Source: Lepidodermella squamata
Lineage: Eukaryota; Animalia; Gastrotricha
Direction of reading: 5' to 3'
Length of the DNA stretch: 64,000 nt
Assembly: GCA_047495785.1 (NCBI GenBank)
Contig: JBLDXI010000011.1
Location: 496,001 to 560,000 of the forward strand
In this document: one piece after another, positions 1,801-51,300 of the stretch
Position numbering within the stretch: the first letter of the stretch is position 1
Layout: each line of letters starts with the position of its first letter
Made by a program: the position numbers and the translations under genes
Notes under the pieces: generated by a model
What the model was told of the DNA's origin: nothing
The model's input: the letters and a program-made list of their open reading frames with translations, nothing else
Databases searched by the model: none

Positions 1801-3224
1801 TTTTTTCAATTTTTTGGTGAAATCGCGGATAACGAATGGAATACTCTCCATGTAGGTTCAATGCCGAAAAATTCGTCGAAAATATATATGAAAAATATAA
1901 AAAAAGTTGCGCAAATTCTTGGTAAATCGCGTAGAATTTCTGCGTAATTTCTTCAAGTGAAAGAAAAATCGAAGAATATGCATTTTTGGGCTTTTTTGGG
2001 TCGATTGATTTCAAAAGCTGGGCCTTCAAAACCGCCGCTTAATTAGAGACCGAGCGATGTGCCATTGAATTTATCAAAAAACGTCAATCTCGATTTTTGT
2101 CATTTTTTTACTATTTGTGTCGTACCATACTAGTAAATATGCACATTATATACTTCGGAAATATTTTTTACCAGTTTTTCTACAACTTTTTTAATAAAAT
2201 TTAATAAATTTTCGGCTTAACTAGGAATTATAGGAAAAATAATTGATAATTGGGTGATATTGATAGATAGATGTTGAGATGCCAGAATTAGACAAAAAAT
2301 TCCCATCCTAACGTGATTTGCGCAAAAATCCATGATAAACTTATTTATTGAGAAGTATAGGTGAAAGATAAAAATTCATCTCGCAATAAAATCTCGAAAT
2401 TTCAGAAAAATGAGCAACCATTCAGAATTGAGAAATGAGCAACAGGTAGAAATAAAAAATAAGAAAGAGAATAATTCGTCAAATTAGTCGAGTCCATATC
2501 TCTACATTTTCCGTTTTTTTCTGCCATCATTTTTCGCGCTTGATTGGACGCCAAGAAAACGCCGGGTTACAACCCTGAAAAATAATGTGTATAAAAATCC
2601 AAAAAGAACTAAGTGAAATTGGACTAACAGGGTCAATGACACGGCCAACCAGGAGACTTTGAGCGAGCCTACAGAGAAATTAAAAAATACACAAATTTTT
2701 AGTTATCGAAGTATTCAAATAATTTAATCACGCATCGAAAATAATATAATTTAAATAGTTACTGATAAAACTGTAGCCTGCGATTTACTCATCTCTTTAC
2801 TCCCTTACTGTCTGAATGCAGTACGATATTCTTTGAGCCAATAGATTGGATGGCTCAAAATTCAACAAAATAACGAAAATAAATCACGAATTATATGAAT
2901 TTTCTCAGAAAATTGTAGTTGAATTATTTATTACTTCTGAATGTTTTGAAGAGCGGACATCAGAAAAATCGAGAACTACTAGAATTCACGTGTTTGAGAT
3001 CAAATGTCTAATTAGGTACACCATATTGTTCCAACCATATGTCGTACGGACCCTCAACAGTTTTGCATAGGAAATAGAATCTATAAAATATGGAACAAAA
3101 TACCTGAAACCGTTATCAACACGCGCTCTATTTCTGTGTTTAAAAAATATATTTTACGTAATTTCTTGAATGATTTTACTAAACACTGTGTTTCGACGGT
3201 TAGACGCCTGTAATCTGTACTCTG

Positions 3225-43780: not shown

Positions 43781-44741
43781 ATGTCTCAGTATTTCGTCTT
43801 TGCGCTTCTAGCTTTTGCTACGATTTTCCAAGAGTCTGAATCGTTGAAATGCTACGTTGCCTCATCGCTCACGCCTGAGCTGCCGGCTAACGCTCAACAA
43901 GTCGAACGTAATGGTGCAAATTTATATTGCAAGGTTTGCTTGAGCATTTAGCTTAACCAGCTTCGAAATTATCTATTCCAGAAACGATACACCGGCGCAA
44001 ATGGAATACAAGTAAGATTCCTATTACTTAGAACTTGGAGTAAAAGCTGAAATTAACTAGCCTTTAGTCCATTGCGGACAAAAATTGCAGCTATTTATAT
44101 GTTTTCATTGTTTGGAAGGGCATGTATCAGTGGGACTTTGACACGTTGAACGTATACCAAGAAGAAAATTTGGACGTGACTTACTTGAGCGATCGAGCTA
44201 TTCGTTTTAAAGAATGCTCATGCAAAACAGACCTCTGCACCGGCAAGGAAATGGATTCGACTTGCGCCGTCAAAAGCCTTAGCAAAGAATGCTGGGCTAT
44301 GCCGGTTAACGGGAACAGCAAAGTTTTCGACCCATTAACAGCGGTCAAAATTCAATGCAGCAGCAATCAACATTGCGCGGTTAGCTATTTCCAGAGTAAC
44401 AAAATTTATGATGAATGATGAATTCATCCTATTTTTTACAGAAAGTGACTTATTGGTCTGGTCCAGCAGCAGTAGGCTACTTGCACGGCTGCATTGATTC
44501 GACATCTGTGAATGCTTGCGGTCGGACATTTTTTAAAAACGTTACTTCCGGCTCGCAAACTGTCGATTACAAAATTTGCACGTGTTGCGGGGAGACGTGC
44601 AACGGCGCCGATTTCGACTCGATGGGACCCGACCAAGAGCTATGCAAAGGCACTAGCGGCGGCTCAGGTGCTGTTTCGCTTCGCCACGCCAACTTGGCAG
44701 GCCTTATCATCGCAACATTCGCTGTTTTATTCGCTTTTTGA
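43781..44741 (+). CDS. Two-domain Ly6/uPAR (three-finger)-like, probably GPI-anchored protein; exons about 43781-43933, 43982-44011, 44119-44379, 44442-44741
   Basis: Signal peptide followed by LKCY; domain ends CSCKTDLCT and CTCCGETCN; hydrophobic C-terminal tail; TATAAA near 43721. Confidence 0.75.
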
Positions 44742-44912
44742 GAACATTGTTTGATTGATGCAATGTGATACAAACCTCACTAACTTTGATTCGTGATTTT
44801 ACTGTTGAAATCGAAACTAAATTGGATAAAATCTTCGATTTGGCAAAGAAGCTTCAAACCCAATGATCCTTTTCAAAGTTTTATTTAAAAATCAAATGAA
44901 ATCAAAATGAAG

Positions 44913-46136
44913 CTATTCTTCGGCTTTTCTGACTCCCTGATTATCTTTGATAATGTTAGGATACATTGCATAGTTCGCAATTCCACAGATATTGATCCCT
45001 CGCCGAACTCGAATGAAACCATTCTCGCCCCACCAAGTTCCCCAGCTATTCACAAGGGTCCAGTACGGGATTTGAACCTGCTCCTCGTTATCACCCTCAA
45101 CAGTTTCGATTCCATAACCAACCAGCAGTAAGGCATGATTCAAATTCATATTGTTGCAATTATCAGCATCGGAGAAAATCCCCGATTTATAGAAAATAAA
45201 CGAACGTTGGCTTGCATCGATCGCAACTACAACCGGTCCGGATTTTAACGCCTCCATCATTTCGTCCTCATTGCCACTCGCTAGTTGGACGTAGGTCATT
45301 ATCCGGCCGTACCGTGAATTCGGGTTATTCTGAAACCGGCAGATCATTGAAGAAAGGCCCATGTAAGGGTATTGGCCCTCGCTGTTAAGGCCTCCGCTAG
45401 AAATCACGTATTCCAACGCAGCGGCTGTTGAGCCACCCTGGCAACCTCCATTTCCGAACGACCAGGAGCAATCTAGGAGATTTTGCGGGGATAATGGGAC
45501 GAAATTCTCGCCGGTTGAAATGTGGAGGCGACTTTCGATAGCTCCAACTGTTGCGAAGGCCCAACTAGCCGAGCAATGTTGGCCCTGATCTCGGACACTG
45601 CCGATAGCTCCGTAGAACCTCCAGTCTAAGAAAGCCGTGATATTCGGTTCCAATAACGGACTCGCTTCATGCATTTTGATGTCGTACAACGCTTTGAAAC
45701 CTCGTTGAAACTAAGAAGACAAAATCAAACTATTCTCCGTGACGTTCTATCAGGCTTACCAGAACAGTTTTCGATTCTAGGCGAAAATATACGCCAGGTT
45801 TAAAGCCGAAGCGCGTTGCCATAATTTCAGACGGGTGCATGTCTCCGAATTTGTTCAACGCGAGTTTGTACAGGTTACTCAGCATGCTTCGATTGCTGTT
45901 GTGGTTGTTTATGAAGTTGAGATTCAACCGAAATTCATCGTACTTTCGCGCCTCGCTCGCTGCTATATGCATCTTTCGGTTGGCCTTTTTCCATTCCTGG
46001 TAATCTACGTCTCGCTTGAATTCCTCTGAAAAGAAATCGGAATATTGAAGAAATATTTGAGTGGGGAATCTTTACCTTCAAGAAACGCATGGGATGCAGC
46101 GAAAATCACGAAAAATAGCTGCAGCGACTTGATCAT
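44913..46136 (-). CDS. Cathepsin L-like papain-family protein with the catalytic Cys replaced by Ser
   Basis: Signal peptide; propeptide with LNKFGD; mature-domain motifs LDWR, QGQHCSASWAF, GCQGG, NHALLLVGYG and NSWG. Confidence 0.9.
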
Positions 46137-46427
46137 TTTTTGTTGTTTTTGTTTAGGAAACAGCGGCGTCGCAAAATGCGAGAAAAACAAACGAGCTCAT
46201 GTTTACACAAGTTGTTTATCGTATACGTTGTTGTTTTGCGAGCGCGTCATCTAAAAAATGAGCCCTGATGGCTATAAATATACGCAAAAATAACTAATGC
46301 GGATATTTACCAAATGAACAGGAAATATATGCATTAAATCAAGGCATCCAATAATTCAATTACAGCCAATGCAGCGTGACGAGAGGATGAGGATGGGAAA
46401 ATCAGGGAAAATTCGAATAAGAATAAG

Positions 46428-46724
46428 ATGCTTGCCAAAATTTTGAATAGCGATAGGAATTTTTTCGCGACCTTGGCTGTTTTAGTCTTTTTCGCAGTGC
46501 TTTTCAACATTTCACTGTATTGCTTCCTGGCTAATCGTGAGCAATTCGGCAAATTTTTTGCGCTCGATGGAGAAACCAAAGCCGGCAGAATTCTTCAAGC
46601 TAGACAGCAGCGGTTACTGGCTGAATGCTATCGAAAATACGGAACAACAGCAGCAAAGGCCTTGCCCATTGTAAAAATAGTCTGCTTGGCCGAAGTTTCA
46701 TCGCTAGATGAGAAAACTACATAA
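46428..46724 (+). CDS. Short type II membrane ORF, possibly the truncated N-terminus of a Golgi transferase
   Basis: ATG start, one N-terminal TM helix and a stem ending RQQRLLAEC; no catalytic domain follows. Confidence 0.3.
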   Translation: MLAKILNSDRNFFATLAVLVFFAVLFNISLYCFLANREQFGKFFALDGETKAGRILQARQQRLLAECYRKYGTTAAKALPIVKIVCLAEVSSLDEKTT

Positions 46725-46977
46725 AATCGTTATTCCCTTCTGTTTGCAATTCTAAAATTATTCTAAAACATATTGAATAAACAGCATTATTTGAATTTCT
46801 CTCCCGATAACGATTTCCCAACGCTTGAAAGTTGAAAACCTATGTGAATAATCGATTTTAAAAATCCCGATTTTCCCGATAGCTGCAGTCGTTATGAAGC
46901 TTCTAGTTTCAATCAATCCCGTAATTTTATTTCTTCGATTAAGCTGCCCATAACCAAAACATTTGTCATCGAACTGT

Positions 46978-48123
46978 TTATGCATTTCTAACGCATCGAG
47001 CGTAATTTAGGACCGTCCTCAAGTCACTCTGCGGCCCAACATACTGCGGGTACGTCTGCCCACTGGCGACATACTTCGGATCACTCCTCTGACACCCAGC
47101 GCCGTGGACATCAACCAAAGTCCCACTCGGCGCACCGTAGCCAAGGCCAAACGCGACATAGGCTGCATACTGAGGCTTAGCACCGTCTTTATGGGTTGAG
47201 CCAGACCAGAAATACGGGAAACCGCTCGAGCCATCTGGAGCTGTTATCGAACTAACGCTGAACAACGAATCAATCGCAGCAGTTCCCGTGGTTTGAGGCC
47301 CTTTCGAGTAATCAACGATACTCTGAAGTTCCTTAGCATTAGGAAGTCGCCAATCTGAGTAGGAAGTTAGCGTAAGACCCTCGCAATACGCTAGGGCGGA
47401 CTTCCAGTCCATCCCGTAGCCGCTATCAGCCTGCTGCCACATAAGACCAGTTGCTTTATCGGTGATTGTACCGTCGGAATTCGACGAAAAGTCATTCACG
47501 CCATACGCGGTGTTGCCTCGAACGAAGCGGAAGTATTTCGAGCTTGTTGTAGGGTAGCATTTGATGCGGCCATCGATGAAATTAACGCCGAACATACATT
47601 CTTGATTGCCGAAGACCAGCCCGGTGTATTTCGTCCCGCTAATCGTTTGAGCATCAATTTCCCTCTCGCCAATGGTTGTATCCCCCAGGGGTTGGTTGAA
47701 GTACGTTTCATCGATGAATTTCTTCGTCCCAGCTTTAGCGCTTGAAACATCGCCCGTCATTTGAATGAGCGAGTACAGCTCTTTGATGGTGGGAATTCGC
47801 CAATCTGTATAGCCAGCCGTGTCTGCGCTTGAAATCGCTGTTAACGCCTCGGCTATCGTCATTTTCGTCATATTTTGCTGCCACATAAGCCCGGTTATTT
47901 GATCCGTGATCGTTCCATCGCCGTTATTGACGTAGGATGGCCAATTCCCGGTGTAAGTCGCGTCCTGGCCGTACCAAGTTGCGCTCGATGAGGTCGGGGC
48001 GTTCTTCCCAGCCAAAACTGCCGTATCGTTGTAGTAGGTCGTTACTCCAGTATCTACGATAGGATAGGTCAGACTGGCAACTAGCGGCAAAGCCGCTAAA
48101 ATCAAGTAAATCGCCTGCAACAT
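46978..48123 (-). CDS. Secreted double-DUF1566 (Lcl C-terminal) protein of bacterial type, intronless, 381 aa
   Basis: Two repeats of N.DGTITD..TGLMWQQ ... DWR(I/L)P..KEL.S(L/I); N-terminal YPIVDTG and GQDA.Y; C-terminal DVHGAG.QRSDPK...GPQ.D...NY.RCVR. Confidence 0.88.
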   Translation of the reverse strand: MLQAIYLILAALPLVASLTYPIVDTGVTTYYNDTAVLAGKNAPTSSSATWYGQDATYTGNWPSYVNNGDGTITDQITGLMWQQNMTKMTIAEALTAISSADTAGYTDWRIPTIKELYSLIQMTGDVSSAKAGTKKFIDETYFNQPLGDTTIGEREIDAQTISGTKYTGLVFGNQECMFGVNFIDGRIKCYPTTSSKYFRFVRGNTAYGVNDFSSNSDGTITDKATGLMWQQADSGYGMDWKSALAYCEGLTLTSYSDWRLPNAKELQSIVDYSKGPQTTGTAAIDSLFSVSSITAPDGSSGFPYFWSGSTHKDGAKPQYAAYVAFGLGYGAPSGTLVDVHGAGCQRSDPKYVASGQTYPQYVGPQSDLRTVLNYARCVRNA

Positions 48124-48330
48124 TTTCGCGAGTGAAAAAGCGATTCGAATCTACCCGGTATTTAAAGCGATACCAATCGACAGCTGTTCACATATTTTTG
48201 TTTTTCTGTCGTTAGTTCTTCTTAAATTAGTTGTCAACATGTTTAATCAGTTTGTTTGATCTGCTGTTCGCACTTCAATTTTATACTGGCCCGGTGCTAC
48301 GTACTCGATAATTCGCACTTTATTCGTAAA

Positions 48331-51300
48331 TTATTTGGATTTGCCATAATTTTGAGCTATAAACGAAGCGATTTCTTTGAAAGGTTTGCCATTCATGTGC
48401 CGCTGCTCGGCTAAAAACTGCGACAACGTAAATGGGCTTTGTTTCGATGAATCCTCAGCCTCCACTCTCGCGCCACACTTTTGAACTAGGTACTTAACCA
48501 TATCCAAATGGCCGCCTTGAACTGCTTTATGTAGAGGCGTTTCGTCCAATCTGTTTCGCAGGTCACTCGTTACGAGTTTCGGACTCTTCTTGTGGATCAG
48601 CTTCAACGAATCCAAAGCTCCAGCCCCAGCTGCGACGTGGACTATTGAATCATCTTGTTCACCACCCCTCGAATCGATTTTTGCCTTGAGGTTAAGCAGC
48701 AACTCGATAATTTGAGGGTTATTCGATTTCGCAGCCAGATGGATCGGTCTCAAGTTCTTATGACCCGGCATTTCGATGTCAATCCGCTTTTTCGCTAACA
48801 TAGTCGCTATATCAGCATAACCATTCAAACAAGCTAGATGAAAAGCTGTATTGCCTTGTGAGTCTTTTGTAGTCACCGCAGCTCCAGAAGTTAGCAACAT
48901 ATCGACAACTCCATAGATTCCAGTCAGAACAGCAAAATGAATCGGAGCTCGTTCGAAATCTTCCTTGCCGCTTTTTGAATTGAGATCAGCCTTTGCTCGG
49001 ATTAAAAGCTTCATGGCCTCGATTTGCTGAGCCTTAGTCGCGGTATGAAGTGGGGTTCTACCATTTTTACCCCGGAGATCTCGGCAGCTTTTGTTGGACT
49101 GAAGCAAGATGTGGCAAAGCTCTATTTGCCCATTACGAGCTGCGATATGAATCGGCTTATCGCCATTCTAAAGAAACGCAACGCAACAATTCAAATTCAA
49201 AATTCGACTGTAAAAAGCCGCCTATAAAGCTTTTAAGAATGAAGATAAGATGAAGGCTTACCGCATCTGGAAGATCCAGCGAAGCTCCTTTCGATAGGAG
49301 CAATTTTGCTACCTCAGACTTCCCAAGTTGAACCGAAAGGGAGAACGGCGTCGTATACAGATCATCCCCTCCTGGTGACCTTTGGTCGATCTTCGCCTTC
49401 TGTTCCAGCAGCAACTCAACCATAACCTTCTGTTGCTCAAATTTGTTAGGATCTCCAAAGGCTACGATTTGGTGCAGCGGGGTCTTCCCGGCAAAACCCG
49501 GCGCTTCGATCTTCGCACCGTTCCTGATCAAAGCCATGCAAGTTTCACTATGCCCTGCTAAAACTGCGAGATGAAGCGGCATATCTCGATTAGCATCCAG
49601 AGCGTTCACATCAGCTCGCTTCTCGCAGAGGAGGTCGATGAGTTCCGGTTTCCCGGCTCCTGCTGCCAAGTGGAGGACTGACCTCGAAGCGTCCAAGATA
49701 CCGCTTTTTGCGAAAATGAAAGCCTTCTTTTCCAGCAATGTTTTCGTAACTAAGATTTGGCCATGAACTGCGGCTGTTAGGAGCGGAGTTCGTTCCATGA
49801 ATCCTTTCGATTCGAGCGGGAAACCCTTTTCCACCAAATATTTAGCTATCTCACTTTGGCCAGACTTTGCCGCAATGTGAAGTGGACCATCCGTGCCGAT
49901 TTTAGCGATTTTTGAAGCTCCCCTTTCGACTAGCAGTTTCACAGCCTCGAATGAGCCGTGGAGAATTGCAAGGCATAGCGGAGTGGCTTCATCGTCTAAC
50001 GGTCCACTTTTCGCATCGATTTGAGCTCGATGTTCCAGAAGGACACGGGCAACCTCATGTTTGTTCTTCCAAGCAGCTTGGTGAAGAGCTGTCCTCATGT
50101 TGAAACCGGGGGTGTCGATATCAAGTTTCCACGACGAGTATTTCGTAAGCAGGAAGCGCGCGATATCAGTATGACCTAAAATTCAGGAAAATTCATAAAA
50201 GATTCGATTTTTAGTCGGTATTACCTGCAATGGCTGCTACATGGAGTGGGGTGTTCTCATTCGAGTCCCGTTCGTTGAGTGGAGCACCATTTTCAATGAG
50301 AAATTCGACCATTTTCCGCTTGCCGTAGTAGCAAGCCAAGTGTAGACAAGTGCTTTCGTGATCCTCCTCGCCACTCCTCGCCTTCAAATTCGCACCGCCT
50401 TGAACCAAAATCTGAGCAGACTCAACTTGCCCCTCAACACAGCAAACATGTAAAGGTCGCCTTCCGTTGAAGCCCCGCATTTCTAGATCAATTTTCGGCT
50501 GTTTGAGATTAACAAAGTACTTCAAAATCTCCAAATTCGGCTGCTTAGCCACTAAATGAAGGGCAGTGTAACCCTCGCCATCTGTTGCATCAACCGGGAC
50601 TTTGAGATCTTGAACCATGGCTGTAACCACACTGAGGTGCCCAGCTAAAGCAGCAGCTATCAACGGGGTATTTCCGCAATCTCCGGTTGATCGAGCATCT
50701 TTTTGAGCCCCAGCTTTGATCAGATCTCGAACTGTATGCGCATTACCGGCTACAGCAGCGGTGTGGAGAGGAGTTCGACCTGCGAAGCCAACAGCCTCAA
50801 AATCACCCCCGTTAACTTGAGACAGGGCTAACGTCGTCTCGCTATTGCCGAATTTCGCAGCGGTATGGATGGGAAGATCCCCGTTATTATTCGGGGCTAG
50901 GAGAAGATCTTTATGAGTCCGACCCAAGTACCACGCAACTTCCGTTTTCCCATGCTGCGCCGCGTAGTGAAGGGCTGTAAACCGGTTTTCGGCCTCGGAA
51001 GCTCGAGCGAAGAGATCAGCATGCCATTGGGACAGCATTTTCACGAAATCAAGGTTTCCTAACATGAAACGTCCCGACTGTATATCAAGTCGTCTGTAAA
51101 GTTGATTTCTTACCTTTTATACAGGCGAGATGAAGCGCCGTCCGTTCAGTTTTACGCGTTCGATCATCCACGTCAGCGCCTTGCCTTAACAACAGCTCCC
51201 CAGCATCAGGATGGTTGAAATTCGCAGCCGTTTGCAGTGGCGTCTGGCCCTCCTCAGTGCTAGCTCTCGTGTTCACATCAGCCCCAATAGCTATCAATGT

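Follow-up and report, generated by a model that had tools for sequence, protein, structure and literature searches.

A complete, intronless coding sequence at 46978-48123 on the minus strand of the window (the whole stretch of 64,000 nucleotides analysed here) encodes a predicted secreted protein with two tandem domains of the Lcl_C family, formerly DUF1566. With a probability of roughly three in four, this is a real animal gene that stems from one ancient bacterial transfer, was duplicated, has been maintained by selection and encodes a likely ligand-binding secreted protein of lectin fold. As a gene transfer into an animal, the case is well founded but of a rather ordinary sort. Horizontal gene transfer into animals is established yet often disputed case by case, and the usual objections are answered here by linkage to host genes, heterozygosity, transcription, selection and occurrence in a second species. 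No literature on horizontal transfer in Gastrotricha was found, the first gastrotrich genome paper makes no mention of gene transfer, and no report of a transfer of DUF1566 (PF07603) to animals was found in the literature. A large, highly conserved family of bacterial tandem-DUF1566 proteins gains a eukaryotic member with this gene; the practical value is modest.

The gene and its neighbours

The reading frame comprises 381 codons from an ATG to a TAA stop at 46978-46980 and is open for just 9 codons beyond the ATG. Bacterial proteins of about 400 amino acids align colinearly with its product along 95-100% of the length, and the gene therefore has no intron. Residues 1-17 (48073-48123, minus strand) form a hydrophobic leader (M-L-Q-A-I-Y-L-I-L-A-A-L-P-L-V-A-S), which reads as a predicted eukaryote-type signal peptide with small residues at positions -3 and -1 of the putative cleavage site (V-A-S) and is followed by LTYPIVDTG. 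Past the stop codon, at a distance of 47-52 nt, lies an AATAAA hexamer resembling a polyadenylation signal (46926-46931, minus strand); in the cDNA-like run X2, the bin 46944-47130 is covered and the bin 46757-46943 is not.

Both neighbours share the strand of the gene. Upstream, an ankyrin-repeat gene with an AATAAA of its own at 48324-48319 ends at 48331 and is separated from the ATG by a spacer of 207 nt (48124-48330, minus strand), part of which is spanned by the bin 48253-48439, where X2 depth is again zero. The 5' UTR must lie in this spacer, along with a promoter or else an acceptor site for trans-splicing. A rotifer spliced-leader sequence and a nematode SL1 sequence were searched for in the genome with up to two mismatches, and neither was matched, a result without diagnostic value for the host. 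The downstream neighbour is a cathepsin L/S-like gene (Peptidase_C1, E 1e-64) whose introns, canonical GT..AG and about 49-50 nt long, lie at ~45711-45759 and ~46026-46074. The original prediction had described an intact, intronless frame of 381 residues with a short signal peptide and with spliced genes at 0.2 kb and 0.85 kb, all of which agrees with the present reading, in which the distances are 207 nt and about 0.85-0.9 kb. GC content at third codon positions is 0.56 in the gene versus 0.45-0.52 in the adjoining host exons. When the large cathepsin exon was queried alone, the best matches reached only 42% and came from vertebrates and amphioxus, which, as judged from this one sequence, marks the host as an animal lacking close relatives in the named databases, the phylum not being given by that exon.

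Domain architecture and bacterial relatives

Pfam recognises Lcl_C (PF07603) in two stretches of the protein (E 6.6e-42; 142.9 bits against a gathering cut-off of 34.9), and a family scan of the animal's own genome likewise returned two domain matches above the cut-off in this frame. Domain 1 (residues 63-204; 47512-47937, minus strand) and domain 2 (residues 213-381; 46981-47487, minus strand), delimited by Pfam, alignment and structure model, are both predicted to adopt a C-type-lectin-like fold, the second being the larger. Domain 1 contains the elements DWRIPTIKELYSL, EREIDAQT and FGVNFIDGRIKCYP and the animal-specific residues Cys176 and Cys189; domain 2 has the animal-specific Cys247 and, towards its C-terminus, DVHGAGCQRSDPK, GPQSD and RCVR. 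The core D-W-R-[ILV]-P-[TN]-x-x-E-L occurs in each domain (D107-W-R-I-P-T-I-K-E-L and D257-W-R-L-P-N-A-K-E-L), with W, R, P, K and L of the core motif invariant across 72 sequences. The motifs of the two-domain subfamily (EREIDAQT, FGVNFxDGRIK, DVHGAGxQRSDPK and GPQxD) are all present, as are those named in the original prediction, in the order given there; its assignment to a prokaryotic double-DUF1566 subfamily is borne out by the two Pfam stretches and by full-length colinearity with bacterial proteins.

Relatives were sought in a collection of 5.8 billion proteins within a length window of 0.55-1.75. Identity to the window protein is 52-61% for the 120 best of the roughly 8000 proteins scored, and every one of those 120 with a source name is bacterial; those named among the proteins listed belong to Flavobacteriaceae, Ignavibacteriales, Desulfobacterales and similar groups. 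All six relatives' contigs that were checked are bacterial, five of them plainly so (P0216, P0111, P0022, P0196 and P0010), and the sole non-bacterial exception among the best relatives listed is P0003, which lies on the contig of a related animal. Atlas clusters consist of 96-100% Bacteria, and the 80 best loci from JGI metagenomes reach at most 58% identity. Among the matches listed, no bacterial sequence is closer than 61% and no broad distribution across animals is seen. The bacterial donor probably belonged to the Bacteroidota/Ignavibacteriota group.

The bacterial proteins of about 400 amino acids (for instance from Formosa, Maribacter, Aureibaculum and Ignavibacteriales MAGs) are uncharacterised; they are 55-61% identical to the window protein and agree with it in both domains and in the order of the motifs. 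Whereas they carry a lipobox cysteine or a longer leader, the animal copies start with a signal peptide of eukaryotic type and lack the Por_Secre_tail (T9SS) extension of their bacterial relatives; in the window protein the leader is free of cysteine, PF18962 is not found and the C-terminus reads CVRNA. The animal copies further differ in three extra cysteines (T176C, G189C and Cys247), a loop shortened by 6-7 columns after GRIK-C-YP and the loss of the near-invariant Trp161, derived states that are common to all four animal proteins. Five bacterial gene neighbourhoods were considered as a functional clue and rejected, as they are not conserved: one contains an arylsulfotransferase, one a heparinase-like neighbour and the rest unrelated genes.

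Host linkage, expression and a probable single origin

The evidence from sequencing runs consists of assembled contigs of the runs X1 (DNA), X2 (2015) and X3 (2014), not of raw reads. In the DNA run, depth is 74-130 across the frame and its flanks, two haplotypes of about equal depth are present both inside and outside the frame, and one contig (46760-47406) spans the 3' junction. Coverage in X2 and X3 is confined to the exons of the cathepsin gene, the window frame and the ankyrin gene; in X2, loose ends consist of SMART-oligo and poly(T) and depth is zero in both intergenic spacers. From this coverage pattern and from the adaptor or poly(T) ends we infer that both runs are RNA-derived. As coverage is limited to exons in two older independent runs, one of them with SMART-oligo and poly(T) ends, the gene is transcribed. 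Purifying selection is evident: 31 of the 37 variants listed in the frame are synonymous and 6 are non-synonymous, and dN/dS between the two paralogues described below is 0.175. Between the window copy and the other paralogues synonymous sites are saturated, at a protein identity of 60%.

The two further intact paralogues lie together on another contig (C12, the window copy being on C11), are 64% (L002) and 60% (L003) identical to the window protein and each begin with a signal peptide. A fourth copy, P0003, adjoins genes for MCM2, a kinase and a guanylate-kinase/PDZ protein in two independent metagenome assemblies. Between this related animal and the host genome (G000), identity of MCM2 amounts to 93% at the protein level and 75% at the DNA level, and collinearity of the P0003 locus with the host genome extends as far as the DUF1566 gene. 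This locus is not syntenic with the window locus, and a true orthologue of the window copy was not found. The transfer is older and more elaborate than a single gene, with three paralogues here and a copy at a fourth locus in the relative.

An artefact, in which the frame of an associated bacterium was stitched into an animal contig by contamination or during amplification and assembly, is highly improbable. It would account for an intronless gene whose product is 57-61% identical to bacterial proteins, and the assembly was made from multiple-displacement-amplified DNA of Lepidodermella squamata, a procedure that generates chimeras. However, depth over the gene equals that of the flanks, both haplotypes run through the frame and into the flanks, the 3' junction is crossed by a contig, and the gene is found in two older independent runs with exon-only coverage. 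Neither a bacterial neighbour gene nor an excess of promoter- or terminator-like sites was found at the window locus; the leader is of eukaryotic type rather than a lipobox, and an AATAAA follows the stop. Two diverged paralogues occur elsewhere in the genome, a homologue with the same derived characters sits among the MCM2, kinase and PDZ genes of the relative in both metagenome assemblies, and no bacterial sequence above 61% identity appears among the matches listed. A series of independent transfers, by which the window copy, the C12 pair and the copy of the relative were each acquired from similar bacteria, is very unlikely as well. The four loci are different and without synteny, and the copies are as distant from each other (53-64% identity) as they are from bacteria (55-61%). 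Yet the four animal proteins form one clade in unrooted trees, with an SH-aLRT support of 87 in a tree of 123 rows and 100/99 in a careful tree of 55 rows. They have in common eight substitutions, including two gains of cysteine, at sites where bacterial conservation is 90% or higher, and neither these substitutions nor the loop deletion occur in any of 68 bacterial rows or in the motif-readable metagenome loci (the animal-type signature was seen in none of the 28 loci with a core motif readable by pattern among the 80 best). Horizontal transfer followed by domestication, as originally proposed, is thus upheld by the bacterial relatives, continuity with intron-bearing animal genes, host-like depth and haplotypes, exon-only coverage, selection and replaced sorting signals, and coverage gives no sign of an assembly chimera; a copy also occurs in a related species, at a non-syntenic locus on an animal contig, and the animal copies branch together.

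According to the preferred reading of one ancient transfer, a bacterial tandem Lcl_C surface or secreted protein of about 400 amino acids entered the gastrotrich lineage, where its lipoprotein or T9SS sorting signals were lost and a signal peptide of eukaryotic type and a poly(A) signal were gained. The three new cysteines and the shortened loop were also acquired after the transfer. Duplication gave rise to the copy on C11, the pair on C12 and the copy of the related species at a further locus, all of which have been retained under purifying selection.

Predicted fold, function and known systems

The structure model of the window protein (pLDDT 90.3, pTM 0.90) suggests a rigid pair of C-type-lectin-like domains akin to bacterial adhesin tips. 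Domain 1 was matched to 8q4e, the C-terminal domain of the Legionella adhesin Lcl, with a Z score of 10.9 and an rmsd of 2.5 A over 109 aligned residues (Foldseek probability 0.99). Domain 2 was matched to the C-terminal domain of Bd2740 (8oks) at Z 8.0, followed by many C-type-lectin-like domains and by TvpA, Mtd and FGE-like folds at Z 6-7. A search of PDB sequences with the window protein gave no significant match, and the relationship was found by fold search only. Disulfide bonds may link Cys176 to Cys189 and Cys247 to Cys377, and the animal-specific cysteines might mimic the disulfides of C-type-lectin-like domains.

Of 178 columns conserved in bacteria, 128 are retained in every one of the four animal proteins; these positions, together with the eight changed ones, point to residues of interest. 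Because most of the residues conserved in bacteria are kept, the type of ligand bound by the protein has most probably remained that of its bacterial ancestors. Judging from Lcl, from fimbrial tip proteins and from the fibre tips of Bdellovibrio, the ligand may be a surface glycan or a polyanionic polymer. In a bacterivorous animal, such a protein might attach to microbes or to the extracellular matrix and so serve in capturing food, in defence or in adhesion, and the suggestion of a role in adhesion, glycan binding or defence made in the original prediction fits the modelled fold.

The same origin could have yielded an enzyme, or a binder of metal or small molecules, on a fold of the FGE/CLec type and retained for its chemistry, which appears unlikely on present evidence. 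For a binding module the subfamily is unusually well conserved, with 55-60% identity across bacterial phyla and 88 columns that do not vary among 72 sequences, and the invariant His, Asp, Arg and Lys residues of the C-terminal motifs, including H311, D338, H340, R346, D348 and K350, would also suit an enzyme or a metal or small-molecule site. Moreover, domain 2 resembles EgtB, SenA, PvdO and CalU17 at Z about 6-6.6, and in Formosa agariphila two tandem copies adjoin an arylsulfotransferase. The top structural matches, however, are adhesin or fibre-tip domains, the enzyme matches fall within the Z range rated as a common arrangement, the Formosa neighbourhood is not conserved in the four other bacteria, and neither Pfam nor NCBIfam picked up a catalytic motif from the FGE or EgtB family. 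A more far-reaching version of the ligand-binding reading, put forward tentatively and doubtful at this stage, is that a bacterial surface-binding module was re-engineered for eukaryotic secretion, with cysteines recalling the disulfides of C-type-lectin-like domains, a trimmed loop and the loss of a tryptophan, and expanded into a family of divergent charge (pI 4.2 to 8.2) of soluble, lineage-specific receptors that recognise polymers of bacteria or of the matrix. With a pI of 4.9 the window protein is acidic in its mature form, and L002, with a pI of 8.2, is basic. If true, this family would be a bacterial-derived counterpart of animal C-type lectins serving feeding, immunity or the adhesive-tube system.

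The closest structural parallel is the collagen-like adhesin Lcl of Legionella pneumophila, a member of the same Pfam family, the C-terminal domain of which is a GAG-binding head of C-type-lectin-like fold in an architecture that includes a collagen-like stalk and an N-terminal anchoring helix (PMC11162425). Both this head and domain 1 are C-type-lectin-like and devoid of the canonical motifs for Ca2+ and carbohydrate. In contrast to Lcl, the window protein has neither collagen-like G-x-y repeats nor an N-terminal anchoring helix, in its sequence or by Pfam match, and it joins two domains in one chain, whereas Lcl is a trimer of single domains with a positively charged surface that binds GAGs. 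Identity to the Lcl domain is only 20%. The CLec-fold tips of Bd2740 (8oks), a Bacteroides fimbrial protein (4eps), Yersinia InvE/invasin, Treponema TvpA and the Bordetella phage protein Mtd resemble the window protein at the fold level (Z 6-8). All of them are terminal ligand-binding modules, have no detectable sequence relationship to it and sit on the tips of long fibres or on DGR-diversified scaffolds. Canonical animal C-type lectins, which are defined by the Ca2+/sugar motifs EPN/QPD and WND and by a conserved double disulfide, are likewise similar at the fold level only (Z about 6), and Lectin_C (PF00059) was not matched by Pfam in the window protein at E <= 0.01.

Bacteria have also been the source of other animal genes for secreted proteins that bind or that act on cell walls, among them many in bdelloid rotifers, the tae and dae amidases of ticks and mites and lysozyme-like genes. 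The window gene has in common with these an intronless, secreted bacterial-type gene that was domesticated, duplicated and placed under purifying selection.

Gene structure, host linkage and transcription

The gene under study could be read directly as an ORF of 381 codons with an ATG start at window 46978-48123 on the minus strand, upstream of which the open frame extends by just nine codons. The encoded protein starts with a hydrophobic leader of 17 residues, followed by LTYPIVDTG, and contains two PF07603 (Lcl_C, formerly DUF1566) domains in Pfam (E 6.6e-42, 142.9 bits, cut-off 34.9); NCBIfam yielded only sub-threshold matches to two adhesin models (Lsa25 and a FimD tip adhesin). The intact 381-aa frame and the short N-terminal signal peptide of the original prediction were borne out, and every motif that it listed was found in the order given.

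The spliced animal genes claimed to lie close by are present as well, both on the same strand as the DUF1566 gene. The ankyrin-repeat gene (48331-51065) ends with a stop at 48331, 207 nt upstream of the DUF1566 ATG (spacer 48124-48330), and carries an AATAAA seven bases past this stop; the two genes might be co-transcribed. Another AATAAA hexamer was read 47-52 nt past the DUF1566 stop. The cathepsin L/S-like gene (Peptidase_C1, E 1e-64) is spliced, its exons lying on either side of canonical GT..AG introns about 49-50 nt long. When its large exon was searched alone, the closest match reached 42% (vertebrates, amphioxus, echinoderm and nematodes), and such distant best matches would fit an animal of a poorly sampled phylum. 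Sigma-70-like promoters and intrinsic terminators were no commoner than in shuffled sequence. The window has a G+C content of about 42%, in an assembly of 121.2 Mb and 151 contigs, and at third codon positions the DUF1566 gene (GC3 0.56) comes close to the host exons next to it (0.45-0.52), with values between 0.31 and 0.73 in the bacterial relatives sampled. The 0.9-kb spacer between the DUF1566 and cathepsin genes contains two overlapping ORFs of 81-98 aa (46428-46724, plus strand; 46334-46579, minus strand) with zero coverage in the cDNA-like runs, which are probably no genes.

Sequencing reads were evaluated throughout as assembled contigs. The DNA run X1 (2024) covers the whole stretch from the cathepsin to the ankyrin gene, spacers and ORF included, with a summed depth of 74-130 in every bin, and one of its contigs (647 nt) spans from 218 nt beyond the 3' end of the ORF into the ORF. 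A second haplotype at about half depth occurs inside the ORF and in the flanks alike. Two older runs that belong to other studies also contain the ORF: X3, from 2014, bears the same organism label and X2, from 2015, a different one, and in them 100% identical pieces stand beside pieces of 92-98% identity. Coverage in X2 and X3 is confined to exons of the cathepsin, DUF1566 and ankyrin genes, the depth of X2 being zero over 46009-46943 and 48253-48439. X2 can be recognised as oligo-dT-primed cDNA by a SMART-type oligo among its loose ends and by a stretch of poly(T) at the cathepsin gene's 3' end. Transcription of the DUF1566 gene is thus supported; a transcript model is not, since contigs cannot give strand, ends or level.

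Within window 44700-50300, X2 also contains many joints between opposite strands about 80-120 nt apart inside exons, probably palindromic amplification or assembly artefacts of the library without biological meaning. At 47552-47592, a 41-nt segment coding for the FGVNFIDGRIKCYP motif, extra contigs in X1, X2 and X3 match and then run into unlike sequence; most simply, they derive from paralogues on contig C12 that have this most conserved segment in common.

Bacterial relatives and animal copies

A search of 5.8 billion proteins, admitting lengths within 0.55-1.75 of the window protein, scored about 8000 relatives. Among the best 120, identity was 49-61% and query coverage 95-100% in nearly all, P0008 being a long partial match (coverage 73%). 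All named matches among these 120 are bacterial (Aureibaculum, Mariniflexile, Maribacter, Formosa, Lacinutrix, Ignavibacteriales, Desulfobacterales and Candidatus Magnetomorum), as the original prediction of a horizontally transferred bacterial-type gene would have it. The contigs of five relatives were all ordinary bacterial gene arrays, and the share of Bacteria in ESM-Atlas neighbour clusters was 96-100%.

The ORF call of the top-scoring bacterial match, P0001 (573 aa, ENA metagenome), spans a partial upstream DUF1566 copy and a complete lipoprotein copy, which suggests that DUF1566 genes occur in tandem in this bacterium as well. Formosa agariphila (HG315671.1; stretch L010, 7091-11667) carries two Lcl_C genes in tandem (380 and 412 aa), with a LytTR-type two-component system on one side and an arylsulfotransferase gene on the other, and a heparinase II/III-like gene precedes the copy of a Bacteroidota MAG (L011). 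These neighbours hint at sulphated-polymer biology; such neighbourhoods were not kept in three other bacteria.

A six-frame search of the whole assembly found exactly three genes of the two-domain architecture (six domain matches): contig C11 carries the window copy, and C12 a pair separated by about 88 kb. The C12 copies are intact, lack introns and start with a hydrophobic leader; identity is 64% and 60% in comparison with the window protein and 83% within the pair. The dN/dS of this pair is 0.175; between the window copy and the other copies, synonymous sites are saturated and 60% of residues are kept. Within the window ORF, 31 of the 37 listed differences are synonymous and 6 non-synonymous.

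On the sister-species check named in the original prediction, a copy in a related species is given by P0003, a protein of 389 aa (59% identity) found on contigs of two independent metagenome assemblies. Being flanked by MCM2, protein-kinase exons, a guanylate-kinase gene and a PDZ gene, it lies on an animal contig. This contig is collinear with the L. squamata locus across the PDZ, guanylate-kinase and MCM2 genes, up to a point just short of the DUF1566 gene, which L. squamata lacks at that spot. The two MCM2 proteins are 93% identical, their DNA about 75%. P0003 therefore comes from a related, clearly distinct species and represents a fourth, non-syntenic locus. In L. squamata, MCM2 residues 485-620 recur at 89% identity in an isolated fragment (C54:3602689-3603096; about 2690-3097 of stretch L009) that lies 1.6 kb 3' of the intact MCM2, at the collinearity break where the related species has its DUF1566 gene.

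Probable single origin and rival histories

In a 123-row tree, a single branch separates the four animal proteins from the rest (SH-aLRT 87), and in a careful 55-row tree their clade is supported at 100/99, with the window copy and P0003 paired at 97/65. Over 68 bacterial rows, 178 columns are at least 90% conserved; 128 of them are unchanged in all four animal proteins and eight are altered in all four (Trp161 lost, T170V, T176C, G189C, M196, S281T, N316 and G353). The animal proteins also have in common a deletion of six to seven columns in the loop after GRIK-x-YP and a further cysteine, Cys247, in A-Y-C-E. This animal-type signature was seen in none of the 68 bacterial rows and in none of the 28 loci with readable core motifs among the best 80 JGI metagenome loci, and a profile built from the four animal proteins found no additional animal-type member. 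The simplest history is a single transfer followed by duplication and then speciation; should the 97/65 pairing hold, the duplication would predate the divergence of the two species. In this unrooted tree with an unresolved base, the shortest paths to bacterial rows lead to MAG proteins of Bacteroidota and Ignavibacteriota that carry T9SS tails.

The published L. squamata genome was obtained by MDA and HiFi sequencing, alongside that of C. elegans in the same study. Contamination or an MDA chimera is very unlikely in view of the heterozygosity common to ORF and flanks, the ORF in independent older runs, the paralogues elsewhere in the genome and the related animal's contig with P0003. Several independent transfers are unlikely and opposed by the support for the animal clade and the derived characters common to its four proteins. 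Within the best 120 matches per search and the length range of 0.55-1.75, nothing observed speaks for vertical descent from an ancient gene of eukaryotes; weak or partial homologues in eukaryotes may lie beyond these bounds. Bacterium-to-animal transfer is a well-known kind of event. Our literature search found nothing tying DUF1566/PF07603 to gene transfer into animals, and the word 'horizontal' is absent from the L. squamata genome paper. New in this analysis are a third gene copy, the non-syntenic copy of the related species, a single-origin tree with discrete synapomorphies and selection figures for the window copy.

Proposed function and comparison with known systems

AlphaFold2, run with a 72-sequence alignment, modelled the two domains as one confidently packed unit (mean pLDDT 90.3, pTM 0.90). 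The leader would direct the protein into the secretory pathway, and the mature protein of 364 residues may be soluble, with its two lectin-like domains in a rigid arrangement, and would keep most of the conserved surface and core of the bacterial family. Its ligand class is probably that of the bacterial ancestors, a surface glycan or polyanionic polymer, and the strong charge differences among the paralogues (pI 4.2-8.2) hint at diversified ligands. A bacterivorous gastrotrich could use it for capture or agglutination of bacteria or for microbe recognition in defence; alternatively, it may be a component of secreted adhesive or cuticular material. The main functional rival, catalysis or the binding of a metal or small molecule, could draw on the unusual conservation, with 88 invariant columns (including His311, Asp338, His340, Arg346, Asp348 and Lys350), and we regard it as doubtful.

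Domain 1 (63-204) is fitted by the C-terminal domain of Legionella Lcl (8q4e; Z 10.9, rmsd 2.5 A, 109 residues, 20% identity), which is C-type-lectin-like without canonical Ca2+/sugar motifs and binds sulphated glycosaminoglycans by a charged surface (PMC11162425). Domain 2 (213-381) matches the C-terminal domain of Bdellovibrio Bd2740 (Z 8.0) and, at Z 5.5-7.8, a Bacteroides fimbrial protein, InvE/invasin, Treponema TvpA, phage Mtd, FGE-like enzymes and many animal C-type lectin domains. Since a collagen stalk, a lipobox, a T9SS tail and a Lectin_C match are all absent from it, the window protein belongs to the Lcl_C family and its two-domain subfamily and is neither an Lcl adhesin nor a canonical animal C-type lectin. 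Of its new cysteines, the one in domain 2 belongs to helix alpha-1 and faces the conserved C-terminal Cys377, and those of domain 1 lie on two adjacent strands. These animal-specific cysteines would fall at sites where canonical CTLDs form disulfides, and putative disulfides here may reflect adaptation to oxidative ER folding.
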